A program made the translations under genes and the position numbers. From contig NIVC01000305.1 of assembly GCA_002269645.1 (NCBI GenBank), positions 372,001 through 436,000 of the forward strand: DNA of 64,000 bases. Direction: 5' to 3'. The notes beneath the pieces are model-generated. The model made no database searches, was not told the DNA's origin, and worked only from the letters and a program-made list of their open reading frames with translations. The stretch is from Macrostomum lignano (lineage: Eukaryota). This document shows, piece by piece, positions 7,716-62,844 of the stretch. How positions within the stretch are numbered: the stretch's first letter is position 1; each line of letters begins with the position of its first letter.

Positions 7716-7771
<56 letters not shown>

Positions 7772-7827: not shown

Positions 7828-7880
<53 letters not shown>

Positions 7881-17470: not shown

Positions 17471-17506
<36 letters not shown>

Positions 17507-32083: not shown

Positions 32084-33385
32084 ATGGCTGTCGAAAGCAT
32101 GAAGCTACTTGCAATATTGCTTCTGTTCTGTTCGATCCTGGCAACGGAAAGCATCGCCAAGCGGAGAGACTATCAAGCCGAGCTGTTCAAATACTTGAAG
32201 AACAACATTACTGACTACAGTCCGAAACTGCGACCTACGCTCGACCTAGACCAGGATGTGGAAGTACACGTCATCGCCTCGCCAAGAATGATTGTATCCG
32301 TGGACAGCGCCAAGCAGAGCATGACAATAGCTGGCATGTTTTTTGCCAGCTGGTACGAGGAGCGACTGGTCTGGGACCCCCAGCTGTTCGGGAATGTCAC
32401 AATGATGGACTGGGACAGCAACCAGCTCTGGCTCCCGGTCATAATCGTCTACAACGGCATGGGAGACAATCAACTGCTCAGTCCTCAGTTTCCGCCGTAC
32501 ATCACTTCCGTGCAGTCCAATTTGTCAGTGGTATCGACAACCTGGAGACAGGAGTGGGAGTTCTCTTGCGAGTTTAATATGACCCGCTTCCCTCTGGACC
32601 GTCACATCTGCGACATGGAGCTGTTCATGAATGCCCGCGCATTGGACAAAATCGTCCCGAGAAAAGGCTTATTATTGGCAAACTCATCGTTTGAATATAA
32701 TGAAGGCGCAGCTTTTGCTCGTAACAGCGAATGGCGGGTGCTGAACCTCAGCACATTCATACGGTACAACGACTTCAAAATGTTCAAAAGTCAGCCGCCA
32801 GTGAAAATGCCGACCTTTGTGATGCGACTGGAGATTGAGCGAGTGTCTACTTACTACATGCTCAACGTGGTGGCTCCCCTAATGCTGCTCACGCTGCTCC
32901 AGGTGCTCGTCTTCTTCGTGCCCGTCGAGTCTGGAGAGAAGCTGGGCTTCGGCATCACCATCACGCTGAGCTACACGGTGTTCCTGCTGCTACTGGACGG
33001 CCTGCTGCCCAAGTCGCAGTCGATGCCGGCCGTGGCGTCGTTCATCACGGCGGCCATGGTGCTGTCGACGTCGTCTCTGCTGCTGACGTCGGTGTCGATT
33101 CGGTTCCACTTCGCTGCGGAGTCTCAGCCGATGCCGTCGTGTCTCCGGTTCATGTTCGTGAGCTGCCTGGGCCGCGCGATGCTGTGCGGTGAGAGGCGAG
33201 GCGGCAGCAGGACGGCGCCGGAGGGAGACGCCGATGACTCCGTGGTGAGCAAGGCGAGCGACGTCGGTGAAAGGCGCTCGGAGTGGCAGGTCGCAGCGGT
33301 CGCCGTGGAGCGGCTGATGATTTTCTTGGGCTGTCCTGCCGCAGTGGCCATTGTGGTTGCATTTGTCATTGTTCCATCCTGTTAA
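32084..33385 (+). CDS. Intronless Cys-loop ligand-gated ion channel, divergent nAChR-like non-alpha subunit; copy 1 (A-type ectodomain, B-type tail)
   Basis: 433-aa single ORF with signal peptide, Cys-loop CEFNMTRFPLDRHIC, M1-M2 PVESGEKLGFGIT, M3 and M4, and a short M3-M4 loop. No vicinal cysteines. Confidence 0.92.
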   Translation: MAVESMKLLAILLLFCSILATESIAKRRDYQAELFKYLKNNITDYSPKLRPTLDLDQDVEVHVIASPRMIVSVDSAKQSMTIAGMFFASWYEERLVWDPQLFGNVTMMDWDSNQLWLPVIIVYNGMGDNQLLSPQFPPYITSVQSNLSVVSTTWRQEWEFSCEFNMTRFPLDRHICDMELFMNARALDKIVPRKGLLLANSSFEYNEGAAFARNSEWRVLNLSTFIRYNDFKMFKSQPPVKMPTFVMRLEIERVSTYYMLNVVAPLMLLTLLQVLVFFVPVESGEKLGFGITITLSYTVFLLLLDGLLPKSQSMPAVASFITAAMVLSTSSLLLTSVSIRFHFAAESQPMPSCLRFMFVSCLGRAMLCGERRGGSRTAPEGDADDSVVSKASDVGERRSEWQVAAVAVERLMIFLGCPAAVAIVVAFVIVPSC

Positions 33386-33944
33386 TTTTAACTCGGCTAG
33401 ACAAAAAATCGAAGCACAGTGATAGAGCGCTCTGTAGTAATATGAACTTATTAAACGTAATTTAAAAAAGCAGTCTCTCTTGTCTAATAGTTATTCTCTT
33501 TTACGTTCTCTAAGAAATGCCTCGCTGCTGAAGCCTTGGGGTCCAAAATTAAAGGTCACATTTGCTTAAACTATTTACACTAATGGGCAATGCTTAAAAT
33601 ACAAAATCCAACTTTAAAATCGAAGTGGTGTCAATCGTTCTAAATACACAAATTTTATTCTTTTTGTGAATCTTTGTGGACTAATTTCTTTCTTAACCTT
33701 TTCTGCAACAAAGGGCATGATACTCCAAAACTGAGTCTATTTTGTACCTTATGTATGGAAAAGCTTTCACACAGAACTTACGGATTCAGAACGGTGAGTT
33801 GTATATAACTGTCACAACTTGAGACATCGCAAAATCTGAAGCGATCGCTGAGTTGACTTCTGCAACTTTAACTTTTCGACTGCACCTTCGACTGCACCCG
33901 CATACTGCCGTCCAGGGCCATGAAAGGCACAGAGTGAGGACCAA

Positions 33945-34200
33945 GGGTTTATTAGGCTGAGGACCATGTGTTCATTGGGCTGAAGACCATGGGTTCATTG
34001 GGCTGAGGACCACGTGTTCATTGGGCTGAAGACCAAGGGTTCATTGGGCTGAAGACTATGGGTTCATTGGGCTGAGGACCACGTGTTCATTGGGCTGAGG
34101 ACCATGGGTACATTGGGCTGAGGACCACGTGTTCATTGGGCTGAAGACCAAGGGTTCACTGGTTTGAGGACCATGACTTCATGAGAACTGAGGACCAATA
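33945..34200. repeat. 23-bp minisatellite downstream of copy 1; homologues at 44728-45010 and 55468-56035
   Basis: Unit TGAGGACCATGGGTTCATTGGGC. The third array is expanded and shifted to GAGACTGAGGACCATGATTTCAT. Confidence 0.9.
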
Positions 34201-34899
34201 ATGTGGTAGCGTGTGGCGTGTGTCTGGGGTGTTTGCATGGTGCTAGTTTGGTTTGGGTGTGTTATCGAATTATCGATTGTTCGTCCGAAGCTTCTAACGT
34301 TTTCGGCTTTGATAAATCTAAAGACAAAATATGTCAATTAATAAACTTTATCTGACATTTTCCAATATGCGAAATTTCCTCCGCTCAATTGGCAGTGAAA
34401 TTTGATAGCGAAGCTGCTATTCTAGTATGATGCTTCGAATTTGGACGAAGCAATTGCTTCTCTTTCGACACCTCGATTTCGCCTCGAATAGTAAATTAAT
34501 TTCACTAAAATATCAAAGCAGTCACGAACCTATAGAGTAAACACCTGAGCCATTTTTACACAGACATGTATAGATGCATGGACACCTGAGGTATAGGCCG
34601 GTGGGATATTTTCGAATCTCTTTTAGGGTTATTATTGTCATCTGGATCGGTATCTGGCAGTCAAGGTCAACTGATTATAGGCTTTTAGCCTGTTAGTCAG
34701 TTCTTCAAAGCCTGTTAGACAGTCTGTAGAGATCTCTAAAACATAGTATAAGCAGACTACTAGAAGTGGAAAGATAAAATATTTGAAAGACAAATTTTAC
34801 ATGCTACGGTTCATACTCAATTTTTAATAGTAATCACGAAAACAGTAAACGTCTATTCCATTATGCGAAAAACCGGTTCTCAACATCTAATTTTAGAAC

Positions 34900-36610
34900 T
34901 TCCTTTGATATCAATTACCGGAGGAGGGGCACAGAGGAAGGCATTCATGCCTTCAAAGGGAGTAGAGGGTGGAGCGCCTATAGTCATGCGTCAGGCTCTG
35001 CCCTGGATTTTGTAGAGATTGCCGAAATTCCAAAATTGCCGAAAGTGGGCTAGATGACCGCTAGCCCACACGAGGCTGGCGTAACAGATTGAGGGGCGGA
35101 TAATGGCAGTGTAAATCCACCACAGTTTTCTGGGGGTGAGCCCTAGGTGGTGCCCACGGCGCACCTGATCTGAGCCAGGACAGCCAGGGCTTTTTTGGCT
35201 TTAGTTTGAATGTGCGGAGTCCAGTTTAAGCCTGTGGTCCAGAGTGAGGCCCAGGCAGCGGACCTGCTTCTCCATGGAAATATCCTTTCCATAGAGGGCG
35301 AGGGGCTTAATGGTCCAGAGCAGTTTGTTGGTAAACATGACCGCTGTGGTTTTCGACTCTGAGAGTCTAAGGCCACATTGGTTTGCCCAACGCTCCGCTC
35401 GTCCCAGAAAGCCCTGCAGAAGATCTCTGAGGTATCAAACGAGGGACCCTCGCATATGGTGGTCACATTATAGGCATAGCCCACCTTGAGAATGGTGTCA
35501 TGGAGATCACTGCAAAGCAACTTATCCATGCGTCCTTTCTGGACAGGCGCCGTTAGAGAGCTGCTGTTCAGGTGGACCACGACAGTGCGGTTCCGGATCA
35601 TGAACATGATCCACCGAACAAGGGGAGGGTGCGTGGCCCTGGATTCCAGGGGTCTGCAAAAGGCCTCGAAGATGACATTGTCGAAGGCCCCCTCAATCTC
35701 CAGGAAAAGCGAGAGGGCAAAGCCGCTGCCAAGAACGGCCCTCTTCAGGAAGTCAACGATGACATTGAGGGCACTCTCAGTGGACCTGCCCGCGCGGAAG
35801 GCGTGCTGGTTATGCGAGAGAGGGAAGCGCTTCAGCTCGATTGAAAGTAAGCGCCAAAGCACCAGTCTTTCGAGGAGCTTAAGGCAGAAGGAGGTAAGGC
35901 TGATAGGCCTGAAGGCCTTCACCTATTGGTAGTCGCAATATCCAGGCTTGGGGATAAAGACCACCCGGGCCTCTTTCCACGCAACTGGTACATAGCCCAG
36001 CTCCACACAAGCTCGGAGGAGACGACAGAGGAGGTCTAGGAAGCGGTGGTTTTTCACTGCCTCGTGCAAGAACGCTTAGTAGATGCCATCGGGCCCAGGC
36101 GCCTTGAACGGGTTGAAGGACCTTGCCGCTCTAGTAATGCGGTCTTTGCTGATCATAGACTTTGCTTGGCCTTGCCCTTCCACGGTGGGGTCAGGCGGGC
36201 CCTGCTGAGTCGGAGATTTAGGGAAGCTCTCTGTGACCGAGCCATCAGGTTTCTTCACAACAGATAGTTTAGAAAAACGGTCGTTCGTGAGTGCCTTTAC
36301 CACGTGGGCTACGGGGCGAGAGCCCTCAAGCCCTTCGCAATATTGGCGCCACTTGGCCCTTCTGACTTGGCCCTTAAACTCGTGGATAGCACGGGTATAG
36401 GCCTCTCTATCAGATGGGTCTTTGGTTTTCAACGCTCGTCTTTGGAGGGTCCTGGCTCGGCGCCGAAGGGCTCTGGGTTTCACCAGGGAGCAGATTTCTT
36501 GCCTTTGAAGGCCTTAAGAGGGCAGGCTGCCTCATAGGCAGTGGTGATCGCCCCGTCCAGGGGGGAGGCGTGATCATCCACAACCCGGCAGTCAGAGAGG
36601 TCACTGGGGA
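34900..36610 (-). mobile_element. Decayed non-LTR retrotransposon RT fragment (LOA/R1-like, inferred)
   Basis: Frameshifted RT-region motifs: FKAPGPDGI, FRPISLTSFCLKLLERL, QHAFRAGRST, LEIEGAFDNV, and [17 protein letters not shown]. Confidence 0.85.
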
Positions 36611-36654
36611 CTGCTAGATCGGAACCCAACCATTCGATGGATGGAGTTGCCCTA

Positions 36655-37850
36655 GCTCCAGAGGCTTATTCTCTGGCGGCTGCTTTCATGCGAGCTGACA
36701 GCAATGCCCCTCAGCAATAATCAGCACGCCTTCCGTACCGAGAGAACGACTGACAGCGCCCTGCATGCGATAGTCGAAAAGATTGAACGGGCGGTACTGG
36801 GTGACGGTTACGCCCTGGCTCTTTTTCTCGACATTGTTGGCGCCTTCGACAACGTTATCTTTAAAGCGTTTCAGAGGGCCCTTCAAAACCGCAAAGCTCA
36901 CGCTACCCTCATACGGTGGATCATGTACATGCTCTCTAACCGTACGGTCACTGCCCAACTTCTCGGGCAAACTGCCTCCACCAGAGTCTGTAAGGGTGGA
37001 CCCCAAGGTGGAGTCCTCAGCCCGACGCTCTGGTATCTGGTCATGGACGCTCTTCTGGGTGACTCCCGACCTGATCCAGTTTTCAAAGTCGGGTATGCTG
37101 ACGACGTATTTGCCATTGTGGCAGGGCCGTCCCCCAGCACGCTCAGGGATCTGATGCAGAGCTTTATCCGCAAAGCAGAATCCTGGGCCAATGACAACGG
37201 TCTGGAACTCTCTGAGCCCAAAACCGTTGCCAATATGTTCACCAGCAGAATACGCTGGAACATACGACCTCTGCAGTTATAAGGCAGAGATATTGCCTTC
37301 GCGCACCAGACCAGATGTCTCGGGATCATAATTGACCACCGGCTCAACTGGTCCTTCCACGTGAAAGCAAAAGCCAAGCGTGCCTCAGCCATCCTGGCCC
37401 AGCTCCGACGAGCACTTGGCACTTCTTGGGGTCTTTCCCCAAAGCGACTTTGGTAGATCTACACTTCCGTAGTTAGACCTGCCATTACGTACGCCTCGGT
37501 TGTCTGGGTTAGCGCTACCCAGGTCAAAAGTCATGCAGATTTGCTCAACACGATCCAGGGCAGAGCGTGTAGGCTTATCTGCAACGCCACCAGGTCCACG
37601 CCCTTTGCCGGCATGGGGGCCTTCCTTAATCTACCGCTTCTCGACCTCTTCGTCAGGGGTGAGGCGGCTAGAACGACGCGGCGTTTACTTGATGCCGGCG
37701 TCAAATTCCTTTGCATGAGGGCACCTGCTAAGCGGAACCTCGTCCCGCATAGCGACCTGTGCCTCAACATTCTTAACGAGTGTCAGGCCAATCGCGTCTT
37801 CACCGATGGCATTGCCTCAACGCTCAACATATTGCTAAAAACTTTGCTTT
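36655..37850 (+). mobile_element. Second non-LTR retrotransposon RT fragment, related but distinct family, head-to-head with the previous one
   Basis: QHAFRTERTT, LDIVGAFDNV, GGPQGGVLSP, GYADD and WGLSPKRLW.IYTSVVRP, with in-frame stops. Confidence 0.88.
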
Positions 37851-38321
37851 CCTGACCCTCAACCGCAGTGGCTGACTCTGGACATATTCGTCACAGCTGG
37901 CTGGTCCCTGCTATCCTGCCTGTCCTTCGTGCCCCTGTTCGCTCACGTGGCCTACTCCAGTCGACTAAAGCGAGGTATACTGGACTTGGACCTGAATCAT
38001 TACGTCACCACGCTGGTGGTAAATCCTAATCTAATAGTTACCATGACAACAGGTGACAAAGCATCCGCCTTTGAGCCAGCTGTGAGGAAACAACGATTTC
38101 AATTTATAAATCTTATAATCGAAAACCGAATTAAATCATATATAAAAGTACGAGTAATCCTTTTCAGTCGTTCTCTACATTTTATCCAATATTAACGCTG
38201 TACATTGGAAACTGCGTTGTGACAGCTAGTCTGGTAAACTCCTTTAATTTATTGGATTTGACTTGTTATACAACAGCTTTTAGCCCTTTAGCTTCACTGA
38301 TTAGCCAGTAGATTCGCTTAA

Positions 38322-38855
38322 CAGTAGGAATGCCACGCCATTTTTCCGCCCGTCGAACTACCAAGGGGAAGGGGATTCCCCCCTAACAAGTGTTTTTGCT
38401 GCGCCCGAACGGAGCAACGCAGGCACACGAAATTCAAGAACACGGGCTAACCTTTGTTATGCAACTTCTCAAACAAGAATCAAGTGGCCAGCCCTCCGGA
38501 CCGTCGAGATATTCGACGATTCTGCCAGAAAGTCGGATTTTAGCCATAAGCGATAGTGTATTCAGTACACCCCTGTACGCCAATTAGCACTGCGCCTTAG
38601 TGCAGCCTTTTCAAGCCTCCAAATTTCATCAGCACGTCGATCACACGCGGCTGCTTCAGCTCTGACTTCTTTAGTCACTGGCCTTCACCCAGGCGGAGCT
38701 TCTGGACCTTCAACAGGTGGCACCAGGTGAGTTTGAGAAGTTGCACAACAAAAAGTTAGCCCGTGCTCTTGAATTTCGTGTGCCTGCGTTGCTCCGTTCG
38801 GGCGCATTAAAGAAATTGTCAGAGGGGGGTAAATTCCCCCTTGGTAGTTCTACTG
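38322..38855. mobile_element. MITE with ~120-bp internal inverted repeats, inserted at a TTAA (or TA) target
   Basis: Ends CAGTAG...CTACTG flanked by TTAA on both sides. Arms 38356-38474 and 38731-38850 are reverse complements. The homologous empty site TTCGCTTAATAGTAG is at ~31135-31149. Confidence 0.88.
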
Positions 38856-39788
38856 TTAATAGTAGCAAGTAGAGTGTAGTCTCATTAAATTTTAATTCAG
38901 TTTTAGCTAAGCAACGACCAAACAATTTTCGCAGAGTACTTCAAGCGAGTTGCCTTGCTGTAAATCTGTTTACAAACCAAATACTTCGTGTTGATCGGCA
39001 AGAAAAATCATCCAATAATCGACGAGATAAACAAAATCAACCTGCTGTCACTGAATAATCGAGGCAAGTCGTTGCTATGGATACAACAGAATGCATCTTA
39101 GGACAGGATGCATATTTAGAACAAATTACTTGAATCGACTTCAAATTTATCACTGCAAAGTAATTTTTTATCAAACTTTGGTAATCACGATTTATAGTAC
39201 CGCATAAATAGCCTACTTGAGTCAACAAATATACTCTGAAGTTTTTAAGCCGTTTATATGCGAGAGGAAACATATTTCGAGGTAAAATAACATAACAGAA
39301 TAAATTACAATGTCATATAGTTAATTACACAACCGACTCTAAAAATGATAGAGCCAAGTCAATTAGACATGAAAGCTCGTTGAAAAATACGCACGAAACT
39401 AATAAAAAGATTATTTACATTAATTAATTTCCAAGGCAAACGCACTGTCAGGACAAATCAACCTACGAGTAATCAAACACAGACGCAAATGATCCATCAA
39501 TTTATGAGTTAGCCAATAGCACTAAATGGGATGGCGATTCAATTATTCAATTATTCAATTATTCAATTATTCAATTATTCAAACGGGTATTTGCTATGCC
39601 CCGATAGCAAATAACCACGATTGCTTCCCATGAACACTGCTTAGTTTGGACTATATGCAATCATAAAACGCATACCGGATGCAATATTGTCTGCTTCTAT
39701 GCATCCATGTAGCATCCAGAGATTACAAATACCGGCATCGAAGCAGTGTATTAGTCGAATTAGAGGCATCTAAGTCGAATCTTTCGCG

Positions 39789-41117
39789 ATGGCTGTCGAA
39801 GGGATGAAGTTGCTTGCAATATTGCTTCTGTTCTGTTCGATCCTGGCAAAGGAATGCCTCGCCAAGCGGAGAGACTATCAAGCCGAGCTGTTCAAATACT
39901 TGAAGAACAACATTACTGACTACAGTCCGAAACTGCGACCTACGCTCGACCCAGACCAGGAGGTAGAAGTACACGTCATCGCCTCACCAGGAATGATTGT
40001 ATCCGTGGACAGTGCCAAGCAGAGCATGACAATAGCTGGTATGTTTTTTGCCAGCTGGTACGAGGAGCGACTGGTCTGGGACCCCCGGCTTTTCGGAAAT
40101 GTCACCGCGATGGACTGGGACGGCAACCAGCTCTGGTTCCCGGTCATATTTGTCTACAACGGCATGGGAGACAATCAACTACTCAGTCCTCAGTTTCCGC
40201 CGTACATCACTTCCGTGCAGTCCAATTTGTCAGTGGTATCGACAACCTGGAGACAGGAGTGGGAGTTCTCTTGCGAGTTTAATATGACCCGCTTCCCTCT
40301 GGACCGTCACATCTGCGACATGGAGCTGTTCATGAATTCCCGCGAATCGGACAAAATTGTCCTAAGAAAAGGCTTATTATTGGCAAACTCATCCTTTGAA
40401 TACAATGAAGGCGTGGCTTTTGCTCGTAACAGCGAATGGCGGGTGCTGAACCTCAGCACATTCATACGGTACAACGACTTCAAAATGTTCAAAAATCTGC
40501 CGCCAGTGAAAATGCCGAACTTCGTGATGCGACTGGAGATTGAGCGGGTGTCCACTTACTACATGCTCAACGTGGTGACTCCCCTAATGCTGCTCACGCT
40601 GCTCCAGGTGCTCGTCTTCTTCGTGCCCGTCGAGTCTGGAGAGAAGCTGGGCTTCGGCATCACCATCATGCTGAGCTACACGGTGTTCCTGCTGCTGCTG
40701 GACGGCCTGCTGCCCAAGTCGCAGTCGATGCCGGCCGTGGCGTCGTTCATCACGGCGGCCATGGTGCTGTCGACGTCGTCTCTGCTGCTGACGTCGGTGT
40801 CGATTCGGTTCCACTTCGCTGCGGAGTCTCAGCCGATGCCGTCGTGTCTCCGGGTCGTGTTCGTGAGCTGCCTGGGCCGCGTGATGCTGTGCGGTGAGCG
40901 GCGAGGCGGCAGCAGGACGGCACCGGAGGGAGACCTCGATGATTCTGCTGTGAACGAACCGAGCCATGACGATAAGAGGACCGGAGAGACGTCCGGAGAG
41001 CCGAGGCGCTCGGAGTGGCAGGTTGCAGAGGTCGCCGTGGAGCGGCTGCTGATCCTCCTAGGCTGTCCGGTCACTTTGGCCATCACGTTTTGTTTCCTTA
41101 TTTTTCCGTTTCTTTGA
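39789..41117 (+). CDS. Intronless Cys-loop ligand-gated ion channel, divergent nAChR-like; copy 2 (A-type)
   Basis: 442-aa ORF with the same architecture as copy 1 but a distinct M3-M4 loop and M4 (DDSAVNEPSHDDKRTGETSGEPRRSEWQVAEVAVERLL). Confidence 0.92.
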   Translation: MAVEGMKLLAILLLFCSILAKECLAKRRDYQAELFKYLKNNITDYSPKLRPTLDPDQEVEVHVIASPGMIVSVDSAKQSMTIAGMFFASWYEERLVWDPRLFGNVTAMDWDGNQLWFPVIFVYNGMGDNQLLSPQFPPYITSVQSNLSVVSTTWRQEWEFSCEFNMTRFPLDRHICDMELFMNSRESDKIVLRKGLLLANSSFEYNEGVAFARNSEWRVLNLSTFIRYNDFKMFKNLPPVKMPNFVMRLEIERVSTYYMLNVVTPLMLLTLLQVLVFFVPVESGEKLGFGITIMLSYTVFLLLLDGLLPKSQSMPAVASFITAAMVLSTSSLLLTSVSIRFHFAAESQPMPSCLRVVFVSCLGRVMLCGERRGGSRTAPEGDLDDSAVNEPSHDDKRTGETSGEPRRSEWQVAEVAVERLLILLGCPVTLAITFCFLIFPFL

Positions 41118-41579
41118 AAAAACATTCGGTGGCACCTTCACGGAGATGGGTTTTCTGATGGGTTAAAAATTCTCGTGTCTGACGAGAGTTTCGATATCTA
41201 AGCACCAAATTAACTTTGAAGATGATACGAAAACATTTTAATAGTGTAATAAAGTCGGTTACTAATATATAGTTGCACTGAGTGAGGTGAAGAGTAAGTA
41301 TCACGCTTAAACGTCATTAGTAATTTTTTCGGCGAACTGAATGTATAGATGTATACGGACACTGTACTAAAAAATTATGATTACTCTTTTCTAGGTCAAG
41401 TTTTTCTTTGGTAAGACCCTCTTGGCACAGCGCAAAAAGCTTAAAAAGATCAGAATAAACAACTTTTCTATGCATTGCCGCTATCCAATAAGATTCTTTT
41501 AAGTTTTCGATTAAAGCTTGTCAAAAAATGCATGCTGCTTCAGGTGTTATTTATAATATAAAATAGTACAATCATATAA

Positions 41580-41870
41580 TGATAGATAACACCTGCCCTA
41601 ATGGGCAGATTTGCAACCGACAGCTCAGCCGCAGCTATTGCGTGTCGCATCTGAAGGCTGCGTACGGCTGTTCAGTCCGAGGACTGGGGGGGGGGTTCAT
41701 ACACACCCTCAATTACCCCCAGCTAATGCTGATACAAATTTTACAGCTGGGTGAACCGAAGCATGTCAGTGTCTTGCTCGAGGACACAAATTGTTCCAAG
41801 AGGGTCGATAATCGAACCCCCGACCTTTCAGTCGTGAGTCCGACGCTCTCACCACTAGGCTAGATTTAAC
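41580..41870 (-). mobile_element. tRNA-derived SINE with a Nin/Deu-like central domain
   Basis: Minus strand has A-box TAGCCTAGTGG and B-box GGTTCGATT, followed by TGTGTCCTCGAGCAAGACACT and CACCCAGCTGTAAAATTTGTA. Confidence 0.6.
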
Positions 41871-42872
41871 TACATCCAATAATAAGATAGTTCAGATGAC
41901 GCAAGTGCAGGAAGGTTCCATGGGAATCGGCCAGAATTGCAAGTCTGAAAACGGCGCAGTATTATTTGATGCAAACATTTTGAAGGGACTGCGTGCGGAA
42001 AACTTATTATAAATCACGCATGGGTTTTATCATATATTATTTACCTTTTCATCCATATGATTTTTAACTAAATAACGCGTGTTAATGTGTCGGCTGCTTC
42101 TTGTGTGTCGAAGGAATTGAAGAAAAATGTGTCCACATTATGCTTTAAGCGACAAACCTCACATGTGAAAAATACTTGCTTGCTGTTATTCATTCTAAGT
42201 TACGCGTGCTAAAGCGCGTCTGCTGCCCCGTGAGGATCAAGGGGAAAACTGAGCACTACCGTGACTTATTGATATGTAATGTTTTAGGGTCTTTGACCTT
42301 AACTATGTATATAAGCTAGGACACAATGGATCAATGGTACAAGCTAAAATTAAATTGGGCATTAGTTATTATTATACGCTATCGTATCTCAGATGAATCA
42401 CATGTAAGTTCTTAGTTTGCGGCCGATTAGAAACTTATAGCTACATTTAGTCATTCTACATTAGATGTCCACACGCTCCTCGAGCGAGCTTTATCCAGAG
42501 GCAAAGATCAGCAGAGGAGCTGCGTAGAATCCGCAAATATCAGTCATACCTGGCAAAGTCAATTTAGAAAATGAATCGCAAATAATACTAATTTGCTGAT
42601 GAGACGAAGGTCACACAATGAGATATACCTGGTTCAGTCCTGCATCAGATTAATTACGGGATACTCAGTGACTGCAATTCACAGATGCTCGTAGCAACTA
42701 AATAGGCAGACTATGCAAACTTCAGAATTTGATAGCCTACTGCAGTGTCAACATGTAAAACGCATTTACGCTTGTATAGCTTAAAGGCTCGGGTTCAACA
42801 GGATCTGGGGATTTTATTGTCCAAGCTTAGCACGCTGCTCATCATTGAGACGGCTAACTCAACTACATCCAC

Positions 42873-47445: not shown

Positions 47446-47492
47446 AGACTGCTAGATCGGAACCCAACCATTCGATGGATGGAGTTGCCCTA

Positions 47493-48688: not shown

Positions 48689-49159
48689 CCTGACCCTCAA
48701 CCGCAGTGGCTGACTCTGGACATATTCGTCACAGCTGGCTGGTCCCTGCTATCCTGCCTGTCCTTCGTGCCCCTGTTCGCTCACGTGGCCTACTCCAGTC
48801 GACTAAAGCGAGGTATACTAGACTTGGACCTGAATCATTACGTCACCACGCTGGTGGTAAATCCTAATCTAATAGTTACCATGACAACAGGTGACAAAGC
48901 ATCCGCCTTTGAGCCAGCTGTGAGGAAACAACGATTTCAATTTATAAATCTTATAATCGAAAACCGAATTAAATCATATATAAAAGTACGAGTAATCCTT
49001 TTCAGTCGTTCTCTACATTTTATCCAATATTAACGCTGTACATTAGAAACTGCGTTGTGACAGCTAGTCTGGTAAACTCCTTTAATTTATTGGATTTGAC
49101 TTGTTATACAACAGCTTTTAGCCCTTTAGCTTCACTGATTAGCCAGTAGATTCGCTTAA

Positions 49160-49694
49160 CAGTAGGAATGCCACGCCATTTTTCCGCCCGTCGAACTACC
49201 AAGGGGAAGGGGATTCCCCCCTAACAAGTGTTTTTGCTGCGCCCGAACGGAGCAACGCAGGCACACGAAATTCAAGAACACGGGCTAACCTTTGTTATGC
49301 AACTTCTCAAACAAGAATCAAGTGGCCAGCCCTCCGGACCGTCGAGATATTCGACGATTCTGCCAGAAAGTCGGATTTTAGCCATAAGCGATAGTGTATT
49401 CAGTACACCCCTGTACGCCAATTAGCACTGCGCCTTAGTGCAGCCTTTTCAAGCCTCCAAATTTCATCAGCACGTCGATCACACGCGGCTGCTTCAGCTC
49501 TGACTTCTTTAGTCACTGGCCTTCACCCAGGCGGAGCTTCTGGACCTTCAACAGGTGGCACCAGGTGAGTTTGAGAAGTTGCACAACAAAAAGTTAGCCC
49601 GTGCTCTTGAATTTCGTGTGCCTGCGTTGCTCCGTTCGGGCGCATTAAAGAAATTGTCAGAGGGGGGGTAAATTCCCCCTTGGTAGTTCTACTG
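49160..49694. mobile_element. Second copy of the same MITE, carried by segmental duplication
   Basis: Same ends, TTAA flanks and context as 38322-38855. Confidence 0.88.
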
Positions 49695-50618
49695 TTAATA
49701 GTAGCAAGTAGAGTGTAGTCTCATTAAATTTTAATTCAGTTTTAGCTAAGCAACGACCAAACAATTTTCGCAGAGTACTTCAAGCGAGTTGCCTTGCTGT
49801 AAATCTGTTTACAAACCAAATACTTCGTGTTGATCGGCAAGAAAAATCATCCAATAATCGACGAGATAAACAAAATCAACCTGCTGTCACTGAATAATCG
49901 AGGCAAGTCGTTGCTATGGATACAACAGAATGCATCTTAGGACAGGATGCATATTTAGAACAAATTACTTGAATCGACTTCAAATTTATCACTGCAAAGT
50001 AATTTTTATCAAACTTTGGTAATCACGATTTATAGTACCGCATAAATAGCCTACTTGAGTCAACAAATATACTCTGAAGTTTTTAAGCCGTTTATATGCG
50101 AGAGGAAACATATTTCGAGGTAAAATAACATAACAGAATAAATTACAATGTCATATAGTTAATTACACAACCGACTCTAAAAATGATAGAGCCAAGTCAA
50201 TTAGACATGAAAGCTCGTTGAAAAATACGCACGAAACTAATAAAAAGATTATTTACATTAATTAATTTCCAAGGCAAACGCACTGTCAGGACAAATCAAC
50301 CTACGAGTAATCAAACACAGACGCAAATGATCCATCAATTTATGAGTTAGCCAATAGCACTAAATGGGATGGCGATTCAATTATTCAATTATTCAATTAT
50401 TCAATTATTCAAACGGGTATTTGCTATGCCCCGATAGCAAATAACCACGATTGCTTCCCATGAACACTGCTTAGTTTGGACTATATGCAATCATAAAACG
50501 CATACCGGATGCAATATTGTCTGCTTCTATGCATCCATGTAGCATCCAGAGATTACAAATACCGGCATCGCAGCAGTGTATTAGTCGAATTAGAGGCATC
50601 TAAGTGGAATCTTTCGCG

Positions 50619-51946
50619 ATGGCTGTCGAAGGGATGAAGTTGCTTGCAATATTGCTTCTGTTCTGTTCGATCCTGGCAACGGAAAGCATCGCCAAGCGGA
50701 GAGACTATCAAGCCGAGCTGTTCAAATACTTGAAGAACAACATTACTGACTACAGTCCAAAACTGCGACCTACGCTCGACCCAGACCAGGATGTGGAAGT
50801 ACACGTCATCGCCTCGCCAAGAATGATTGTATCCGTGGACAGTGCCAAGCAGAGCATGACAATAGCTGGCATGTTTTTTGCCAGCTGGTACGAGGAGCGA
50901 CTGGTCTGGGACCCCCGGCTTTTCGGAAATGTCACCGCGATGGACTGGGACGGCAACCAGCTCTGGTTCCCGGTCATATTTGTCTACAACGGCATGGGAG
51001 ACAATCAACTACTCAGTCCTCAGTTTCCGCCGTACATCACTTCCGTGCAGTCCAATTTGTCAGTGGTATCGACAACCTGGAGACAGGAGTGGGAGTTCTC
51101 TTGCGAGTTTAATATGACCCGCTTCCCTCTGGACCGTCACATCTGCGACATGGAGCTGTTCATGAATTCCCGCGAATCGGACAAAATTGTCCTAAGAAAA
51201 GGCTTATTATTGGCAAACTCATCCTTTGAATACAATGAAGGCGTGGCTTTTGCTCGTAACAGCGAATGGCGGGTGCTGAACCTCAGCACATTCATACGGT
51301 ACAACGACTTCAAAATGTTCAAAAATCTGCCGCCAGTGAAAATGCCGAACTTCGTGATGCGACTGGAGATTGAGCGAGTGTCCACTTACTACATGCTCAA
51401 CGTGGTGACTCCCCTAATGCTGCTCACGCTGCTCAGGTGCTCGTCTTCTTCGTGCCCGTCGAGTCTGGAGAGAAGCTGGGCTTCGGCATCACCATCATGC
51501 TGAGCTACACGGTGTTCCTGCTGCTGCTGGACGGCCTGCTGCCCAAGTCGCAGTCGATGCCGGCCGTGGCGTCGTTCATCACGGCGGCCATGGTGCTGTC
51601 GACGTCGTCTCTGCTGCTGACGTCGGTGTCGATTCGGTTCCACTTCGCTGCGGAGTCTCAGCCGATGCCGTCGTGTCTCCGGGTCGTGTTCGTGAGCTGC
51701 CTGGGCCGCGTGATGCTGTGCGGTGAGCGGCGAGGCGGCAGCAGGACGGCACCGGAGGGAGACCTCGATGATTCTGCTGTGAACAAACCGAGCCGTGACG
51801 ATGTGAGGACCGGAGAGACGTCCGGAGAGCCGAGGCGCTCGGAGTGGCAGGTTGCAGAGGTCGCCGTGGAGCGGCTGCTGATCCTCCTAGGCTGTCCGGT
51901 CACTTTGGCCATCACGTTTTGTTTCCTTATTTTTCCGTTTCTTTGA
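50619..51946 (+). pseudogene. Intronless Cys-loop channel copy 4 (A-type) with a 1-bp deletion in M1
   Basis: CTGCTCCAGGTG in the other copies reads CTGCTCAGGTG at ~51434, splitting the ORF (50619-51503 and 51437-51946). This may be a homopolymer sequencing error. Confidence 0.75.
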
Positions 51947-52409
51947 AAAAACATTCGGTGGCACCTTCACGGAGATGGGTTTTCTGATGGGTTAAAAATT
52001 CTCGTGTCTGACGAGAGTTTCGATATCTAAGCACCAAATTAACTTTGAAGATGATACGAAAACATTTTAATAGTGTAATAAAGTCGGTTACTAATATATA
52101 GTTGCACTGAGTGAGGTGAAGAGTAAGTATCACGCTTAAACGTCATTAGTAATTTTTTCGGCGAACTGAATGTATAGATGTATACGGACACTGTACTAAA
52201 AAATTATGATTACTCTTTTCTAGGTCAAGTTTTTCTTTGGTAAGACCCTCTTGGCACAGCGCAAAAAGCTTAAAAAGATCAGAATAAACAACTTTTCTAT
52301 GCATTGCCGCTATCCAATAAGATTCTTTTAAAGTTTTTGATTGAAGATTGTCAAAAAACGCATGCTTGCTTCAGGTGTTATTTATAATATAAAATAGTAC
52401 AATCATATA

Positions 52410-52702
52410 ATGATAGATAACACCTGTCCTAATGAAGCAGATTTGCAACCGACAGCTCAGCCGCAGCTATTGCGTGTCGCATCTGAAGGCTGCGTACGGC
52501 TGTTCAGTCCGAGGACTGGGGGGGGGGGTTCATACACACCCTCAATTACCCCCAGCTAATGCTGGTACAAATTTTACAGCTGGGTGAACCGAAGCGTGTC
52601 AGTGTCTTGCTCGAGGACACAAATTGTTCCAAGAGGGTCGAGAATCGAACCCCCGACCTTTCAGTCGTGAGTCCGACGCTCTGACCACTAGGCTAGATTT
52701 AA
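52410..52702 (-). mobile_element. Duplicate of the tRNA-derived SINE
   Basis: TAGCCTAGTGGTCAGAGCG...GGTTCGATTCTCG on the minus strand, in the same context as 41580-41870. Confidence 0.6.
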
Positions 52703-53602
52703 CTACATCCAATAATAAGATAGTTGAGATGACGCAAGTGCAGGAAGGTTCCATGGGAATCGGCCAGAATTGCAAGTCTGAAAACGGCGCAGTATTATTT
52801 GATGCAAACATTTTGAAGGGACTGCGTGCGGAAAACTTATTATAAATCACGCATGGGTTTCATCATATATTCTTTACCTTTTCATCCATATACATGTGAA
52901 AAATACTTGCTTGCTGTTATTCATTCTAAGTTACGCGTCCTAAAGCGCGTCTGCTGCCCCTTGAGGATCAAGGGGAAAACTGAGCACTACCGTGACTTAT
53001 TGATATGTAATGTTTTAGGGTCTTTGACCTTAACTATGTATATAAGCTAGGACACAATGGATCAATGGTACAAGCTAAAATTAAATTGGGCATTAGTTAT
53101 TATTATACGCTATCGTATCTCAGATGAATCACATGTAAGTTCTTAGTTTGCGGCCGATTAGAAACTTATAGCTGCATTTAGTCATTCTACATTAGATGTC
53201 CACACGCTCCTCGAGCGAGCTTTATCCAGAGGCAAATATCAGCAGAGGAGCTGCGTAGAATCCGCAAATATCAGTCATACCTGGCAAAGTCAATTTAGAA
53301 AATGAATCGCAAATAATACTAATTTTCTGATGAGACGAAAGTCACACAATGAGATATACCTGGCTCAGTGCTGCATCAGATTAATTACGGATACTCAGTG
53401 ACTGCAATTCACAGATGCTCGTAGCAACTAAATAGGCAGACTATGCAAACTTCAGAATTTGATAGCCTACTGCAGTGTCAACATGTAAAACGCATTTACG
53501 CTTGTATAGCTTAAAGGCTCGGGTTCAACAGGATCTTGGGATTTTATTGTCCAAGCTTAGCACGCTGCTCATCATTGAGACGGCTAACTCAACTACATCC
53601 AC

Positions 53603-54910
53603 ATGCCACAGTTTAGCCTTACCCGCTTCTGTTTGGTCTTCAGCGCCATCGCTAGTGTTCAGGCGGCTCAGGCTAGAGACTTTGAAGCGGATTTGCTCGA
53701 TTACTTGAAGACTAACAACTCTCGGTATAGCCGTACGCTCAGGCCGAAACTAGATCCACATCAGGTGATTGAAGTGTCGCTCGGTGCTTGTCTGCTGAAA
53801 ATTCTGGACGTAGACAGCGCCAAGCAGAGCGTCACCATAGCCGCAATGGTCTACGCGATGTGGTTTGATGAACGCCTCGTCTGGGACCCGACCCAGTTTG
53901 GGAACATCACAATATTGGAATGGGACAACCAGCAAATCTGGTTTCCTCCAATCGTTATTCTGAATGGTCTCGGCGACAATCAGCTGCTGAAGCCGGAGTT
54001 TCCATCATTTTTGGCCTCGATGTCATCGAAAAAGACATTGGTGTCGACTATTTGGCGACGAGATTTCGAGTTCACCTGCCAATTAAGCATGTACCGATTT
54101 CCAATGGATCGACACGTATGCAATTTTAGTTTGTATATGGAGGACCAGGCTCAGCTATACAAAAGTATCGTTCCAAGCAAGAAATTTTTGTGGAATGCGG
54201 AGAATGAGCAAGATGTGGAGTTAAATGAAATTGGTGCGTATAAAAACAGCAGCGAGTGGCGACTGCTAAGTTTGAGTACTTCGGTAGAATATGGACTTGT
54301 CAACTTTTTTAAGAATTCACCACTGATGCTAATACCAGCCTACAATATGCAAATGGAAATCGAGCGGGAGTCCACTTACTACATGCTCAACGTGGTGACT
54401 CCACTACTGCTGCTCACGCTGCTCCAGGTGCTCGTCTTCTTCGTGCCAGTCGAGTCTGGAGAGAAGCTTGGCTTCGGCATCACCATCATGCTGAGCTACA
54501 CGGTGTTCCTGCTGCTGCTGGACGGCCTGCTGCCCAAGTCGCAGTCGATGCCGGCCGTGGCGTCGTTCATCACGGCGGCCATGGTGCTGTCGACGTCGTC
54601 TCTGCTGCTGACGTCGGTAGCGATTCGGTTCCACTTCGCTGCGGAGTCTCAGCCGATGCCGTTGTGTCTCTGGGTCGTGTTCGTGAGCTGCCTGGGCCGC
54701 GTGATGCTGTGCGGTGAGCGGCGAGGCGGCAGCAGGACGGCGCCGGAGGGAGACGCCGATGACTCCGTGGTGAGCAAGGCGAGCGACGTCGGTGAAAGGC
54801 GCTCGGAGTGGCAGGTCGCAGCGGTCGCCGTGGAGCGGCTGATGATTTTCTTGGGCTGTTCTGCCGCAGTGGCCACTGTGGCTGCATTTGTCATTGTTCC
54901 ATTCTGTTAA
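53603..54910 (+). CDS. Intronless Cys-loop ligand-gated ion channel, divergent nAChR-like; copy 5 (B-type, intact)
   Basis: 435-aa ORF with signal peptide, Cys-loop CQLSMYRFPMDRHVC, GEK motif and four TM segments. Confidence 0.92.
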   Translation: MPQFSLTRFCLVFSAIASVQAAQARDFEADLLDYLKTNNSRYSRTLRPKLDPHQVIEVSLGACLLKILDVDSAKQSVTIAAMVYAMWFDERLVWDPTQFGNITILEWDNQQIWFPPIVILNGLGDNQLLKPEFPSFLASMSSKKTLVSTIWRRDFEFTCQLSMYRFPMDRHVCNFSLYMEDQAQLYKSIVPSKKFLWNAENEQDVELNEIGAYKNSSEWRLLSLSTSVEYGLVNFFKNSPLMLIPAYNMQMEIERESTYYMLNVVTPLLLLTLLQVLVFFVPVESGEKLGFGITIMLSYTVFLLLLDGLLPKSQSMPAVASFITAAMVLSTSSLLLTSVAIRFHFAAESQPMPLCLWVVFVSCLGRVMLCGERRGGSRTAPEGDADDSVVSKASDVGERRSEWQVAAVAVERLMIFLGCSAAVATVAAFVIVPFC

Positions 54911-57322
54911 TTTTACTCGTCTAGAGAAAAATCGAAGCACTCTTATTCGGCGTTAAGTTGTAGTATGAGCTTATCGAACGTAATTTCAAAAAAGAAAGAG
55001 CTATTTCCTTTGTCTAATAATTATTCTCTGTTACATTTTTTAAAGAAATAGCTCGCTTCTGAAGCTTTGAAGTCCAAAATAGAAGTTTATATTTGCTTAC
55101 ACTGGCTACTGGACAATGCTTAAAATACAAAATCCAACTTTAAAATCGACGTGGTCGCATTCGCTCTGAATGCACCAATTTTATCCTTTTTGTGAATCTT
55201 TGTGGTCTAATTTTATTTTTTAACCTCTTTTGCGACTAAGGTCTCGGTACTCCGAAACTGAGGCTGTTTTTACTTTATGTACCGGTATGGAAAAGCTTGA
55301 GTTTACACGGCACCTACGGATTCAGAACGGCGAGTTGGAGACTGTCACCAATTGGGACATCCCAAATCTGAAGCGATCACTGATTTGACTTCTGCAACTT
55401 TAACTTTCAGAAACTTTTAGGCTGCACCTTCGTCCCGCATACTGCCGTCCGGGGCTATAAAAGGCACACAGTGAGGACCAAGGGTTTATTGGGCTGAGGA
55501 CCATGGGTTCATTGGACTGAGGACCATGGGTTCATGAGAATGAGATCCATGGGTTCAATGGGCTGAGGACCATGATTTCATGAGACTGAGGACCATGAAT
55601 TCATGAGACTGAGGACCATGATTTCATGAGACTGAGGACCATGGGTTCATGAGAATGAGATCCATGGGTTCAATGGGCTGAGGACCATGATTTCATGAGA
55701 CTGAGGACCATGAATTCATGAGACTGAGGACCATGATTTCATGATACCGAGGACTATGAATTCATGAGACTGAGGACCATGATTTCATGAGACTGAGGAC
55801 CATGGGTTCATGAGAATGAGATCCATGGGTTCAATGAGCTGAGGACCATGATTTCATGAGACTGAGGACCATGAATTCATGAGACTGAGGACCATGATTT
55901 CATGAGACCGAGGACTATGAATTCATGAGACTGAGGACCATGGGTTCATGAGACTGAGGACCATGATTTCATGAGACTGAGGACCATGATTTCATGAGAC
56001 TGAAGACAATGGGTTCATTGGGCAGAAGACCAAGGCTTCGTTGTGCTGAAGACCAATGATGTCGTAGCGTGGGGCATGTGTCGCGTTTCTGGGGCGTTTT
56101 GTGCTGGTATGAGGTTTCGTTTGATTGGTATTTAGTTGGCGTGGGGGCTGCTCTCTTATTACTTGCATCTCGCCACGCCAGTTGGATGAGAGTCTATTTA
56201 TAACCTTTCTATCGCTTTCTATCGCTAACAGAGACAGTGACAGTTCATTAGGTTAGAGACCATGATTTTATTTGTGCTGAGGATCATGGCTTCATGAGAC
56301 TGGGGATCATGGTGTGGTGGCATGCGTCGCTGTTTGCATATACAAAATGTCCTCTACTCGTTGACAGTGAACCTCGACAGCAAAACTGCCATTCCAGTAT
56401 GCCGCTTAGAATTTCGGACGAAACAATTGCATCTAGGTCGTATTTTGTCATCTCGAATAGCTATTTGCTTTTCTTCCAGCTTTCCAATCTAAAGCAATAA
56501 TAAATCCACAGTCACAGGCTCAGAGCGATAGCTAATGCATCCGCAAACACTGGATGAAAGCGATTTAATGTCATAAAAATCTCGAAGTAGTCACTGACCT
56601 AGAGTAAATACCTGAGCTATGTTTACACAGATATGTAAACATGAACACTTGAGTTCAGACCAATGGAATATCTTTGAATCATTTTTTAGGATAAATATAG
56701 CTATCTGGATTGATATCCGCCAGTCAAAGCCAATGGATTATATGGCTCTGGTTCCAGTGCTGTCCGTTCAAACAAAACCCATCACAGGCAGGCTGGTCGC
56801 AAAGAAATTTGTTCTACACAGTGACCTGGAACTGTTTGCCCTGTGCATTAGCCTAATTGCATTTCGGAGGAGTGTATTTACAAATAGGACTATAGAAACG
56901 TATGATTATTAGTGTCCAAATACCAAGTTTTCGGACAAAGCAAAGTTTGTCACGGTATAGATTGGAGTGCTTTCAGTTCCAGGCGTTCAATAAATTCTTT
57001 TTCAGGAAAATCGAGTGTATAGTGTATTTCTACTCCAGTTATTAATGTTTGTGATTAAGTGAATAATTAATCTGTCAAATATCTTGTGTGTCCTCTAACG
57101 AATGTTTATCAATCTGCCGTGTTACTCACATTGCCAGTAGTTTATCCAATTACCGCATTAGCAGCTTCATGCTGCAGCATAAATCTGATTAGCTTCAGCC
57201 AATAACTATTCACCAGGGAAGTGAAAAAGCAGCCGAACTCTAAAAAAAGATGAGCCTGCTCACATAAAACCTGCGATTCACCAACCGGAGTTCACTGCTT
57301 ACTGGTCTCAAATAAGAGCGAA

Positions 57323-58642
57323 ATGCTGTGTAAAATATTCATTAAAGCTCTTGCTCTTGTCGCCTTGCTGACCACTGAATATCAGTTAGCAGCAGGTGCT
57401 GAAGACTACGAGGCCGAACTGTTGCACTACTTAAGGCACAACATCACCGGCTACAGCCCGACTCTCCGACCATTGCTGAATTCAAAGCAGACTGTCTTTG
57501 TGTCAGCAGACATTATAATTGGTCAGATAATCTCGGTTGACAGCTCAAAGCAAAGTGTAACAATTTCCGCAATTATCTCAGCCAGCTGGAGCAACGAGCG
57601 GTTAATCTGGGACCCGGCCAAGTTCGGCAACATCACCGTGATGGACTGGGACAGCAGTCAGCTCTGGTTCCCTGTTGTGGTCGTCTACAACGGCCTTGGA
57701 GACAACCAGCTGCTGAGTCCTCAGCTTCCGACATTCATCACGTCAGTGTCGCCCAACAGATCTACAGTGTCCACCGGCTGGATCGGGCAGTGGGAGTTCT
57801 CCTGCAAGTTTAACATGAATCGGTTTCCGTTCGATCGGCACTCCTGCGAGATGGAGCTGTTTGCGAATGACCAGAGCCGCGGGTTGCCCAGCACTGTTAT
57901 AAAGAAAGGGGTCATTTCTACTGATGCGCCATCGGAGCCAACGGAGTACAACAATAAGGGTGCCTATAGGACCAATGGCGAATGGAACTTGGTCAACTTG
58001 ACCACTTATATAAAGAAAATACCCTATGAGGTGCTTAAGGGAGCATCAAAGGTTAATCTGTCTACGTTGGCTTTGCACATGGAGCTCGAGCGAGTGCCCA
58101 CTTACTACATTTTGAGCGTAATGACCCCCCTGCTGCTGCTCACGCTGCTCCAGGTGCTCGTCTTCTTCGTTCCCGTTGAGTCTGGAGAGAAGCTGGGCTT
58201 CGGCATCACAATCATGCTGAGCTACACGGTGTTTCTGCTGCTGCTGGACGGCCTGCTGCCCAAGTCGCAGTCGATGCCGGCCGTGGCGTCGTTCATCACG
58301 GCGGCCATGGTGCTGTCGACGTCGTCTCTGCTGCTGACGTCGGTGTCGATTCGGTTCCACTTCGCTGCGGAGTCTCAGCCGATGCCGTCGTGTCTTCGGT
58401 TCGTGTTCGTGAGCTGCCTGGGCCGCGCGATGCTGTGCGGTGAGAGGCGAGGCGGCGGCAGGACGGCGCCTGAGGAAGACGCCGACGACGCTGTGGTGAG
58501 AAAGGCGGGCGACGACGGCGAGAAGCGCTCGGACTGGAAAGCAGCTTCAACCGCCGTGGAGCGGTGCATGATTGTCGTAGGCTTGCCAATCACCGCAGCG
58601 CTTTTGATCGCTTTGGTCGCGGTTCCTTTTGCTGAATTTTGA
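57323..58642 (+). CDS. Intronless Cys-loop ligand-gated ion channel, divergent nAChR-like; copy 6 (C-type, intact)
   Basis: 439-aa ORF with signal peptide, Cys-loop CKFNMNRFPFDRHSC, GEK motif and four TM segments. Confidence 0.92.
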   Translation: MLCKIFIKALALVALLTTEYQLAAGAEDYEAELLHYLRHNITGYSPTLRPLLNSKQTVFVSADIIIGQIISVDSSKQSVTISAIISASWSNERLIWDPAKFGNITVMDWDSSQLWFPVVVVYNGLGDNQLLSPQLPTFITSVSPNRSTVSTGWIGQWEFSCKFNMNRFPFDRHSCEMELFANDQSRGLPSTVIKKGVISTDAPSEPTEYNNKGAYRTNGEWNLVNLTTYIKKIPYEVLKGASKVNLSTLALHMELERVPTYYILSVMTPLLLLTLLQVLVFFVPVESGEKLGFGITIMLSYTVFLLLLDGLLPKSQSMPAVASFITAAMVLSTSSLLLTSVSIRFHFAAESQPMPSCLRFVFVSCLGRAMLCGERRGGGRTAPEEDADDAVVRKAGDDGEKRSDWKAASTAVERCMIVVGLPITAALLIALVAVPFAEF

Positions 58643-62195: not shown

Positions 62196-62844
62196 TTTGA
62201 AACTTGACAAGCAATTCGGTCCCGCTCAAGGTTTGTGTCGCTTTGCAGCTCTCCTCTAATAATCTCTTCTCTGTAATAAATCTCTTATCTGTAACAAATC
62301 TCTTCTCTATTAAGTCTCCTCTCTAATAATCTTTTCTCTTCCTTCTCTCCTCTTCTCTTTTTTCTCTTCTCTTCACTTCTTTCACTTCTCTTCCCCTCTC
62401 GCTTTTCTCCTCTCTCTGCTCTCTCTTCTCTCGTCGCTACTCTCCTCTCTCGTCTCTACTCTCTTCTCTCTCCTCTCTCGTCTCTACTCTCTTCTCTCCT
62501 CTCTCCTCTCTCGTCTCTCGTCTCTACTCTCCTCTCTCGTCTCTACTCTCTTCTCTCTCCTCTCTCGTCTCTACTCTCTTCTCTCCTCTCTCCTCTCTCG
62601 TCTCTACTCTCTTCTCTCCTCTCTCGTCTCTCGTCTCTACTCTCTACTATCTTGCCTCCTCTTTTCCTCTGACTCTCTTCCCTATCCCCTCCTCTATCTG
62701 GCAGTCATGCACTATGACTAAATTCTCTACCCTAGAAAAAAAACAAGCCAAACTTGCTAAGTACTTGGTAAGTCAACAATGCAACCTCGTGGCAAGTACC
62801 GCCTAAGTACTTTCTAAGTTTTCCAAGTACACTCAATAAGTATT

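Follow-up and report, generated by a model that had tools for sequence, protein, structure and literature searches.

In the 64,000-nt stretch of DNA analysed here (the window, within which all positions are numbered), six genes for subunits of Cys-loop receptors lie in tandem on the plus strand between positions 32084 and 58642. We interpret this array, with a probability of about 0.6, as a lineage-specific and probably flatworm set of orphan pentameric cation-channel subunits that were derived from nicotinic acetylcholine receptors (nAChRs) and underwent domain-limited gene conversion. The genes carry three types of ectodomain (A, B and C) and follow one another in the order A1, A2, B1, A3, B2, C1 (Table 1). 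An earlier note on this DNA, hereafter the original prediction, had proposed a retroposed and locally amplified cluster of chemosensory receptors that lack the acetylcholine (ACh) box. The array is real and the residue-level description given in that note is correct, its interpretation is partly supported, and two features were missed by it, namely the homogenised pore half of the genes and the broken copies.

Six channel genes without the canonical acetylcholine site

The open reading frames (ORFs) of all six genes matched the Pfam families Neur_chan_LBD (E values of 2e-24 to 2e-30) and Neur_chan_memb (1e-16 to 3e-18). A tblastn search of the window with the four intact proteins as queries returned exactly these six copies, and no additional copy or fragment. 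The coding sequences are single-exon because each frame runs uninterrupted from a hydrophobic signal peptide through M4; the term is used here for the coding sequence, and introns in the untranslated regions are possible. The ORFs, the Pfam matches and the tblastn count together confirmed the six single-exon, same-strand Cys-loop genes of the original prediction, but only four of the six copies (A1, A2, B2 and C1) are intact as assembled, and it had been overlooked that B1 and A3 are broken. In B1, the codon at 42873 is GTG where B2 has the initiator ATG, and a 1-bp deletion (one G) near 42941 shifts the frame within the signal-peptide region. Comparison of the ectodomains of B1 and B2 gave a ratio of nonsynonymous to synonymous divergence (dN/dS) of ~0.8, a value that would fit relaxed constraint on B1, and this gene is probably a pseudogene. 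Relative to A2, A3 has lost 1 bp at 51434 in M1 (CC to C), and appears to be either a frameshifted pseudogene or an assembly error.

The best sequence matches found by phmmer in the PDB were nAChR alpha1, beta1, alpha3, alpha4 and alpha7, with top E values of ~1e-30 to 1e-32; the best match of A2 was muscle nAChR alpha1 (E 2.5e-32). An AlphaFold2 model of C1 had the canonical fold of a subunit of pentameric ligand-gated channels (pLGICs), with a predicted local distance difference test score (pLDDT) of 87.3, a predicted template modelling score (pTM) of 0.80 and transmembrane helices at residues 260-281, 289-311, 320-346 and 404-437. When this model was compared with the PDB by Foldseek, the best 50 matches were nAChR chains without exception; their TM-scores were 0.68-0.75 (query-normalised) and 0.73-0.88 (target-normalised). 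The two cysteines of the Cys-x13-Cys loop are C162-C176 in type A, C159-C173 in type B and C161-C175 in type C, and the M3-M4 stretch of the array genes is ~57-66 residues long. The SGEK ring (with Glu at -1') and Leu9' are present in every array member, and the FPxD motif of the Cys-loop, the pre-M1 Arg and the M2-M3 Pro are invariant across the family. The array genes encode subunits of Cys-loop pentameric ligand-gated channels of the cationic, nAChR-like branch.

The residues of the ACh site were checked against muscle alpha1 in a HMMER alignment and across 63 sequences aligned with MAFFT. The loop B position, which is Trp149 in alpha1 and lies 7 residues after the second Cys, is Asn in types A and C and Glu in type B. 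At the loop D Trp position we found Met in A and B2, Thr in B1 and Ile in C; types A and C retain the loop A Tyr, where B has Leu; and no family member has the Cys-Cys of loop C. In the 63-sequence alignment, all six of the family members have lost both tryptophans, of loop B and of loop D, as well as the Cys-Cys of loop C. At the loop B position, relatives from the flatworm Macrostomum lignano have Ser (P0001) or Asn (P0002) in the same alignment, and at the loop D position Ile or Phe; two unannotated paralogs at one M. lignano locus (L001) have Ile and Ala at the loop B position in a family alignment read by eye. These alignments uphold the prediction of a dismantled aromatic box in a protein that keeps the Cys-loop, the GEK ring and Leu9' and has a short M3-M4 loop. 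Judged by the tryptophans of loops B and D and the vicinal Cys-Cys of loop C, a canonical ACh orthosteric site would not be expected in these proteins. Pfam, the PDB matches, the alignments and the AlphaFold2/Foldseek comparison agree on nAChR-derived cation-channel subunits without the canonical ACh box. Loss of the aromatic box is nevertheless not distinctive of the array: among the 57 nearest non-family cluster representatives, the loop B Trp is kept in 44 and the loop D Trp in 39, and ~10 have neither, among them vertebrate muscle beta1 and proteins of gastropods, Dreissena, Lineus and Montipora.

A homogenised pore block and the growth of the array

Identity profiles revealed in each gene a 405-nt block that runs from the pre-M1 'EIER' codons through M1-M3 to ~35 codons after M3. 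Between types A, B and C, this block is 91-100% identical at the nucleotide level, whereas the ectodomains are 40-55% identical, and the step in identity is located at the boundary between the ectodomain and the transmembrane domain (TMD). Across the six genes, 90 nt of the block are identical. The nucleotide differences in the ectodomain and in the block differed with Fisher p values of 1e-34 to 1e-53. Between types, the proportion of synonymous differences (pS) in the ectodomain is 0.70-0.83, which is saturated, and dN is 0.38-0.51, whereas dS in M1-M3 is 0.05-0.18. The GC content at third codon positions (GC3) is 0.85-0.88 in the block and 0.54-0.67 in the ectodomain, a rise in the direction expected if GC-biased gene conversion had acted. 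Downstream of the block the genes are mosaic: the loop and M4 are common to A1, B1 and B2 (dS 0), whereas A2/A3 and C1 differ (dS 0.75-0.9). A1 is itself a mosaic in the identity profile, with an A-type 5' flank and ectodomain and a B-like loop, M4 and 3' flank.

The three paralogs at the M. lignano locus L001 have a dN of 0.08-0.13 and a dS of 0.9-1.0 in M1-M3, and a block GC3 of 0.55-0.78. Because these paralogs encode nearly the same M1-M3 protein at such a high dS, protein constraint alone is insufficient to account for the nucleotide identity in the array. We conclude that recent interlocus gene conversion, or repeated unequal exchange, probably homogenised the channel half of the genes, in tracts that end at the ectodomain/TMD boundary. 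In the open literature searched, we found no report of domain-restricted gene conversion in pLGIC arrays. Region-restricted gene conversion in clustered receptor genes is known from the variable exons of the clustered protocadherins, which resemble the array in that one part of the tandem paralogs is homogenised and the recognition part is diverse, and differ from it in belonging to another protein family.

The local amplification proposed in the original prediction was shown directly by a tandem duplication of ~10.8 kb and by the mosaic paralogs. Self-BLAST aligned positions 32822-42058 with 43616-52891 at 97.7% identity over 9.3 kb, and the homology continued between 42161-45010 and 52892-55754. 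The tandem copies have diverged by ~2.3%, and the synonymous difference of the recent gene copies is ~0.03. At the sites that distinguish A1 from B2, B1 is B2-like up to 43988 and A1-like from 44196 on, with a short mosaic between (A1-like at 44129-44151, B2-like at 44172-44195). Because B1 switches at 43988-44196, the crossover can be placed within the final ~190 nt of coding sequence or the stop codon, in the 3' end shared by A1 and B, where the two are nearly identical; on the informative-site map it falls in M4 and the stop codon. Such a junction would be expected from non-allelic homologous recombination between the A1 and B 3' ends. The start of the transmembrane block (32822/43616) was rejected as the breakpoint of the duplication; the informative sites show that merely the homogenised block begins there. 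The resulting order is A1, reverse-transcriptase (RT) debris, A2 and B1, then, after the junction, RT debris, A3, B2 and C1. The six genes are thus accounted for by four older genes and one recent 10.8-kb tandem duplication. An older event links A1 to A2, whose ectodomains have a dS of 0.12 and whose 5' flanks are homologous over ~1.4 kb, and also links the 3' flank of A1 to that of B2 (80-87% identity).

The RT fragments between A1 and A2 occur again at 46085-48693, between B1 and A3, having been carried along in the 10.8-kb duplication. Their location on opposite strands suggests nested or rearranged retrotransposon copies, and no intact element is present. A 23-bp minisatellite (TGAGGACCATGGGTTCATTGGGC) forms the end of the 3' flank common to A1, B1 and B2; it also follows B1 (44727-45012) and B2 (55472-56018), with ~24 copies after B2 and 11-12 elsewhere. 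Beyond it, the RT debris starts in the A1 and B1 copies.

The retroposed origin that had been proposed for the cluster found no such support. The sole indication of it is the absence of introns in a region where, as predicted, the neighbouring genes bear them: the choline transporter gene has at least five exons, and the DAO-like and DNMT3-like genes are also split. No A-run of 7 or more was found within 700 bp of any array stop codon, and no poly(A) remnant follows any copy; target-site duplications and a parent gene were not searched for. The intronless tandem state is common to the M. lignano locus L001, and therefore any retroposition would be old and not an event of this locus.

Relatives and competing explanations

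An exhaustive phmmer search was performed over 1.84 billion cluster representatives of a collection of 15 billion proteins, in which the only relatives of the family were M. lignano genes, likewise intronless and in tandem. The search gave one full-length relative with 47% identity (P0002) and the fragments P0004, also from M. lignano, and P0021; below these, the matches fell to ordinary nAChR-like proteins with 22-32% identity. P0001, whose cluster includes PAA92206.1 of M. lignano, is 45-48% identical to the window proteins. Among the matches listed by a word-indexed homology search were two M. lignano proteins and one Pomacea protein. Exact look-ups on public contigs gave no match for the window proteins, P0001, P0002 or P0021, and a locus for P0152 alone. 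The PAA92206.1 locus (L001, NIVC01000059.1) holds three family ORFs on one strand, uninterrupted and spaced 0.8-1.5 kb apart. Two of them, at 7863-9188 and 12783-14105, are full-length family paralogs that flank PAA92206.1 and for which no gene is called in the record used. The M. lignano family, with at least 5 paralogs, is larger than the annotation suggests, and the intronless, tandem, box-less state is older than the split from Macrostomum and no innovation of the locus in the window.

In a neighbour-joining (NJ) tree of 102 sequences with 100 bootstraps, the four intact window genes grouped in 100/100 replicates, as did the window genes together with those of M. lignano. The nearest outgroups were alpha9/10-like and unnamed proteins of sea stars, Lingula, amphioxus, corals, bivalves and annelids. 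Neither phmmer nor the NJ tree gave a one-to-one orthologue of the array family outside Macrostomum, a metagenome scan with the family profile gave no relative, and the open literature searched contained no specific report of the family in Macrostomum or other flatworms. No cephalopod was found among the 30 clusters looked up for their names (28 receptor and 2 transporter matches). The bootstrap support, the 22-32% identity of the nearest outgroups and the lack of cephalopods in the named clusters bear out the lineage-specific clade that had been suspected.

Molluscs are known to have intronless, tandem and highly divergent nAChR genes, and nAChR expansions have been noted in annelids too (Jiao et al. 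2019, BMC Genomics 20:937, PMC6896357). The array resembles them in its single-exon nAChR-like genes, same-orientation tandem arrangement, lineage-specific clade, high divergence and partly degenerate copies. It differs in that its nearest relatives are those of the flatworm M. lignano, its identity to the molluscan and annelid genes is 22-32% and the family is small, and a homogenised pore-coding block is not described by Jiao et al. The array would fit the category of lophotrochozoan intronless tandem nAChR expansions, in a new lineage. The cephalopod chemotactile receptors (CRs), such as CRT1 and CRB1 (van Giesen 2020, Allard 2023, Kang 2023), are, according to the summaries in PMC11526382 and PMC10338036, intronless nAChR derivatives with hydrophobic agonists and sensory expression. 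They share with the array an nAChR origin, the lack of introns, the cation-channel type and an ACh site that is not used. The array lies outside the CR clade as far as the two were compared, the NJ tree having been built without CR sequences, and no CR chain was among the best 50-60 PDB matches of a window protein, of two box-less molluscan proteins or of the Foldseek search. Its architecture is CR-like, but membership of the CR clade is not demonstrated.

Another lophotrochozoan nAChR-like subunit without the loop C Cys-Cys is the annelid Alpo4, an orphan that is insensitive to ACh (eLife 2023;12:e86029, PMC10338036). Alpo4 retains the aromatic cage (F103, W159, Y199, Y205, W65), whereas the array family is without the loop B and D Trp. 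Vertebrate muscle beta1 has the same fold as the array proteins and has neither the loop A Tyr nor the tryptophans of loops B and D nor the Cys-Cys; in contrast to the array genes, it is conserved, single-copy and intron-rich, with one-to-one orthologues and a long M3-M4 loop.

The array grows and turns over by non-allelic homologous recombination and by birth and death, two of the six copies having been disabled later, and interlocus gene conversion appears to keep the pre-M1-to-post-M3 block nearly identical while the ectodomains remain far apart. The subunits may assemble among themselves into homo- or heteropentamers on the common pore and interface module. Gating, if it is by ligand, would be by a compound other than ACh at the remodelled pocket, where the divergent loops B, C and F would determine specificity. 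Selection may tolerate conversion in the channel half and remove the tracts that erase ectodomain differences.

Several points weigh against this reading. Vertebrate muscle beta1 is without the same aromatics and yet belongs to an ACh receptor, and most members keep, two residues ahead of the loop B position, a Phe or Tyr that could still line a pocket. The conversion pattern is seen in one cluster only, the M. lignano L001 array being without it. The two 1-bp deletions in B1 and A3 could be assembly errors because both sit in 2-base homopolymers; the start-codon substitution in B1 is evidence of decay that is independent of them.

A possible but doubtful alternative is that the genes encode peripheral chemosensory receptors, a flatworm counterpart of the cephalopod CRs with an independent origin from nAChRs. 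The array shares hallmarks described for the CRs and other chemoreceptors (PMC11526382): it is intronless, tandem and nAChR-derived, with the ACh-binding residues lost. Within its ectodomain, conservation is lowest in the ligand loops B, F and C (identity 0.23-0.27 between types vs 1.00 in M2), which sit on a fixed pore, its copies turn over by birth and death with pseudogenes, and its clade is separate from all else in the NJ tree. However, the family is small, with 3 types here, the dN/dS of ~0.27 between the ectodomains of A1 and A2 gives no sign of diversifying selection, and these hallmarks are also found in hundreds of molluscan nAChR-like genes tied to development, immunity and stress and not to chemosensation (PMC6896357). 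We regard it as unlikely that the array belongs to a flatworm chemoreceptor family, derived from nAChRs independently of the cephalopod CRs, in which interchangeable sensor ectodomains are combined with one pore module that domain-limited conversion keeps uniform so that any mix of subunits can co-assemble. It seems quite improbable to us that the products are conventional structural or accessory subunits that bind no ligand themselves and join, in ACh-gated receptors, canonical alpha subunits encoded elsewhere. Three divergent ectodomain types on one identical TMD suggest assembly within the family, the principal and complementary faces are both altered, and the identity to any conserved synaptic subunit is 22-32%, with no one-to-one orthologue outside Macrostomum. 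In favour of such subunits are the canonical cationic nAChR type of the pore, the high-affinity choline transporter gene ~5 kb upstream and the example of vertebrate muscle beta1 (P0071 cluster), in which the loop A Tyr and the tryptophans of loops B and D are likewise missing.

We consider it very improbable that the array is non-functional and consists of decaying retrocopies that serve no role. Disabling lesions are present in two of the six copies, and silent genes were found to be more frequent among intron-poor nAChRs (Jiao 2019, PMC6896357), but the other four are full-length ORFs in which the signal peptide, the Cys-loop, the gating residues and M1-M4 are intact. Moreover, dN is far below dS (0.13 and >1, respectively, in M1-M3 between the window genes and their M. 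lignano relatives), and M2 is 96% identical between the two despite saturated synonymous sites. That the duplication, the homogenised block or both are artefacts of assembly or polishing is hardly credible. The window contains no N runs and hence no gaps, and the change from B-like to A1-like sequence, in frame and within a gene, is a junction that two alleles of one locus could not yield. The block is 91-100% rather than uniformly 100% identical, its differences are inherited consistently (A2 = A3, B1 = B2) and its GC3 is raised. In favour of an artefact, the 97.7% identity of the 10.8-kb copies is within the range of heterozygous haplotypes, and both frameshifts are 1-bp losses in dinucleotide runs.

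As it stands, the array of orphan subunits is a further example of a described phenomenon, together with an instructive evolutionary mechanism. If its genes are expressed and gated by a ligand other than ACh, the repurposing of neurotransmitter-gated channels would extend to flatworms, functional demonstration having so far come only from the cephalopod CRs. Three ectodomains of 40-55% identity on one 91-100% identical pore block amount to a natural experiment, which marks the pre-M1 boundary as a point for swapping pLGIC modules; the same boundary is the junction used in laboratory alpha7/5-HT3 chimeras. The array supplies four constructs for deorphanisation.

Neighbouring genes and repeats

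Table 1. Positions of the array genes, their homogenised blocks and other features of the window
Feature	Position	Strand	Remarks
A1	32084-33385	+	intact, 433 aa; ORF, Pfam LBD and TM domains
A2	39789-41117	+	intact, 442 aa; ORF, Pfam
B1	42873-44179	+	B-type; start codon lost, frameshift; carries junction of recent duplication
A3	50619-51946	+	recent copy of A2; frameshift in M1
B2	53603-54910	+	intact, 435 aa; loop B position Glu, loop A position Leu
C1	57323-58642	+	intact, 439 aa; ORF, Pfam, AlphaFold2 model
Homogenised block, A1	32822-33226	+	identity profiles
Homogenised block, A2	40527-40931	+	identity profiles
Homogenised block, B1	43616-44020	+	identity profiles
Homogenised block, A3	51357-51760	+	identity profiles
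Homogenised block, B2	54347-54751	+	identity profiles
Homogenised block, C1	58073-58477	+	identity profiles
First copy of tandem segmental duplication	32822-42058	+	self-BLAST, informative-site map; period ~10.8 kb
Degenerate reverse-transcriptase fragments	35143-37422	both	between A1 and A2; RVT_1 E 5e-10, 2e-20
23-bp minisatellite	33935-34197		~550 bp downstream of A1
High-affinity choline transporter (SLC5A7/CHT1-like)	22513-26740	+	at least 5 exons; ends ~5.3 kb upstream of A1
D-amino-acid/D-aspartate oxidase-like gene (Pfam DAO)	16638-19249	+	split by intron holding 32/63-bp minisatellite 17978-18651
DNMT3-like gene fragments	~2014-13392	-	C-5 cytosine methylase domain 2933-3343; ADD_DNMT3 zinc finger 6534-6899
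Long minisatellite arrays	4-1963, 2571-2904, 3324-3795, 4082-6492, 7524-9187, 10381-12217		
Long minisatellite arrays	19641-20771, 21616-22417, 22761-23158, 59636-61606, 62838-63324		

The best matches by identity of the choline transporter upstream of the array came from trematodes and a monogenean (59-61%), none of them close. A gene of the cholinergic synapse thus stands beside a receptor cluster without an ACh site, possibly by coincidence. As for the DNMT3-like gene, parasitic flatworms and planarians have been reported to be without DNMT3; its presence is either informative on the lineage or weakens the assignment to flatworms.

Long minisatellites are very dense in the introns and intergenic DNA of the window, with periods of 16-46 bp and up to ~150 copies, and generate many spurious long ORFs on both strands. 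A 178-aa antisense ORF at 54404-54940 on the minus strand, which overlies the GC-rich 3' half of B2, was rejected as a gene and is most likely a by-product of the block GC3 of ~0.86; the remaining repeat-borne ORFs were put down to GC-rich or repetitive sequence.

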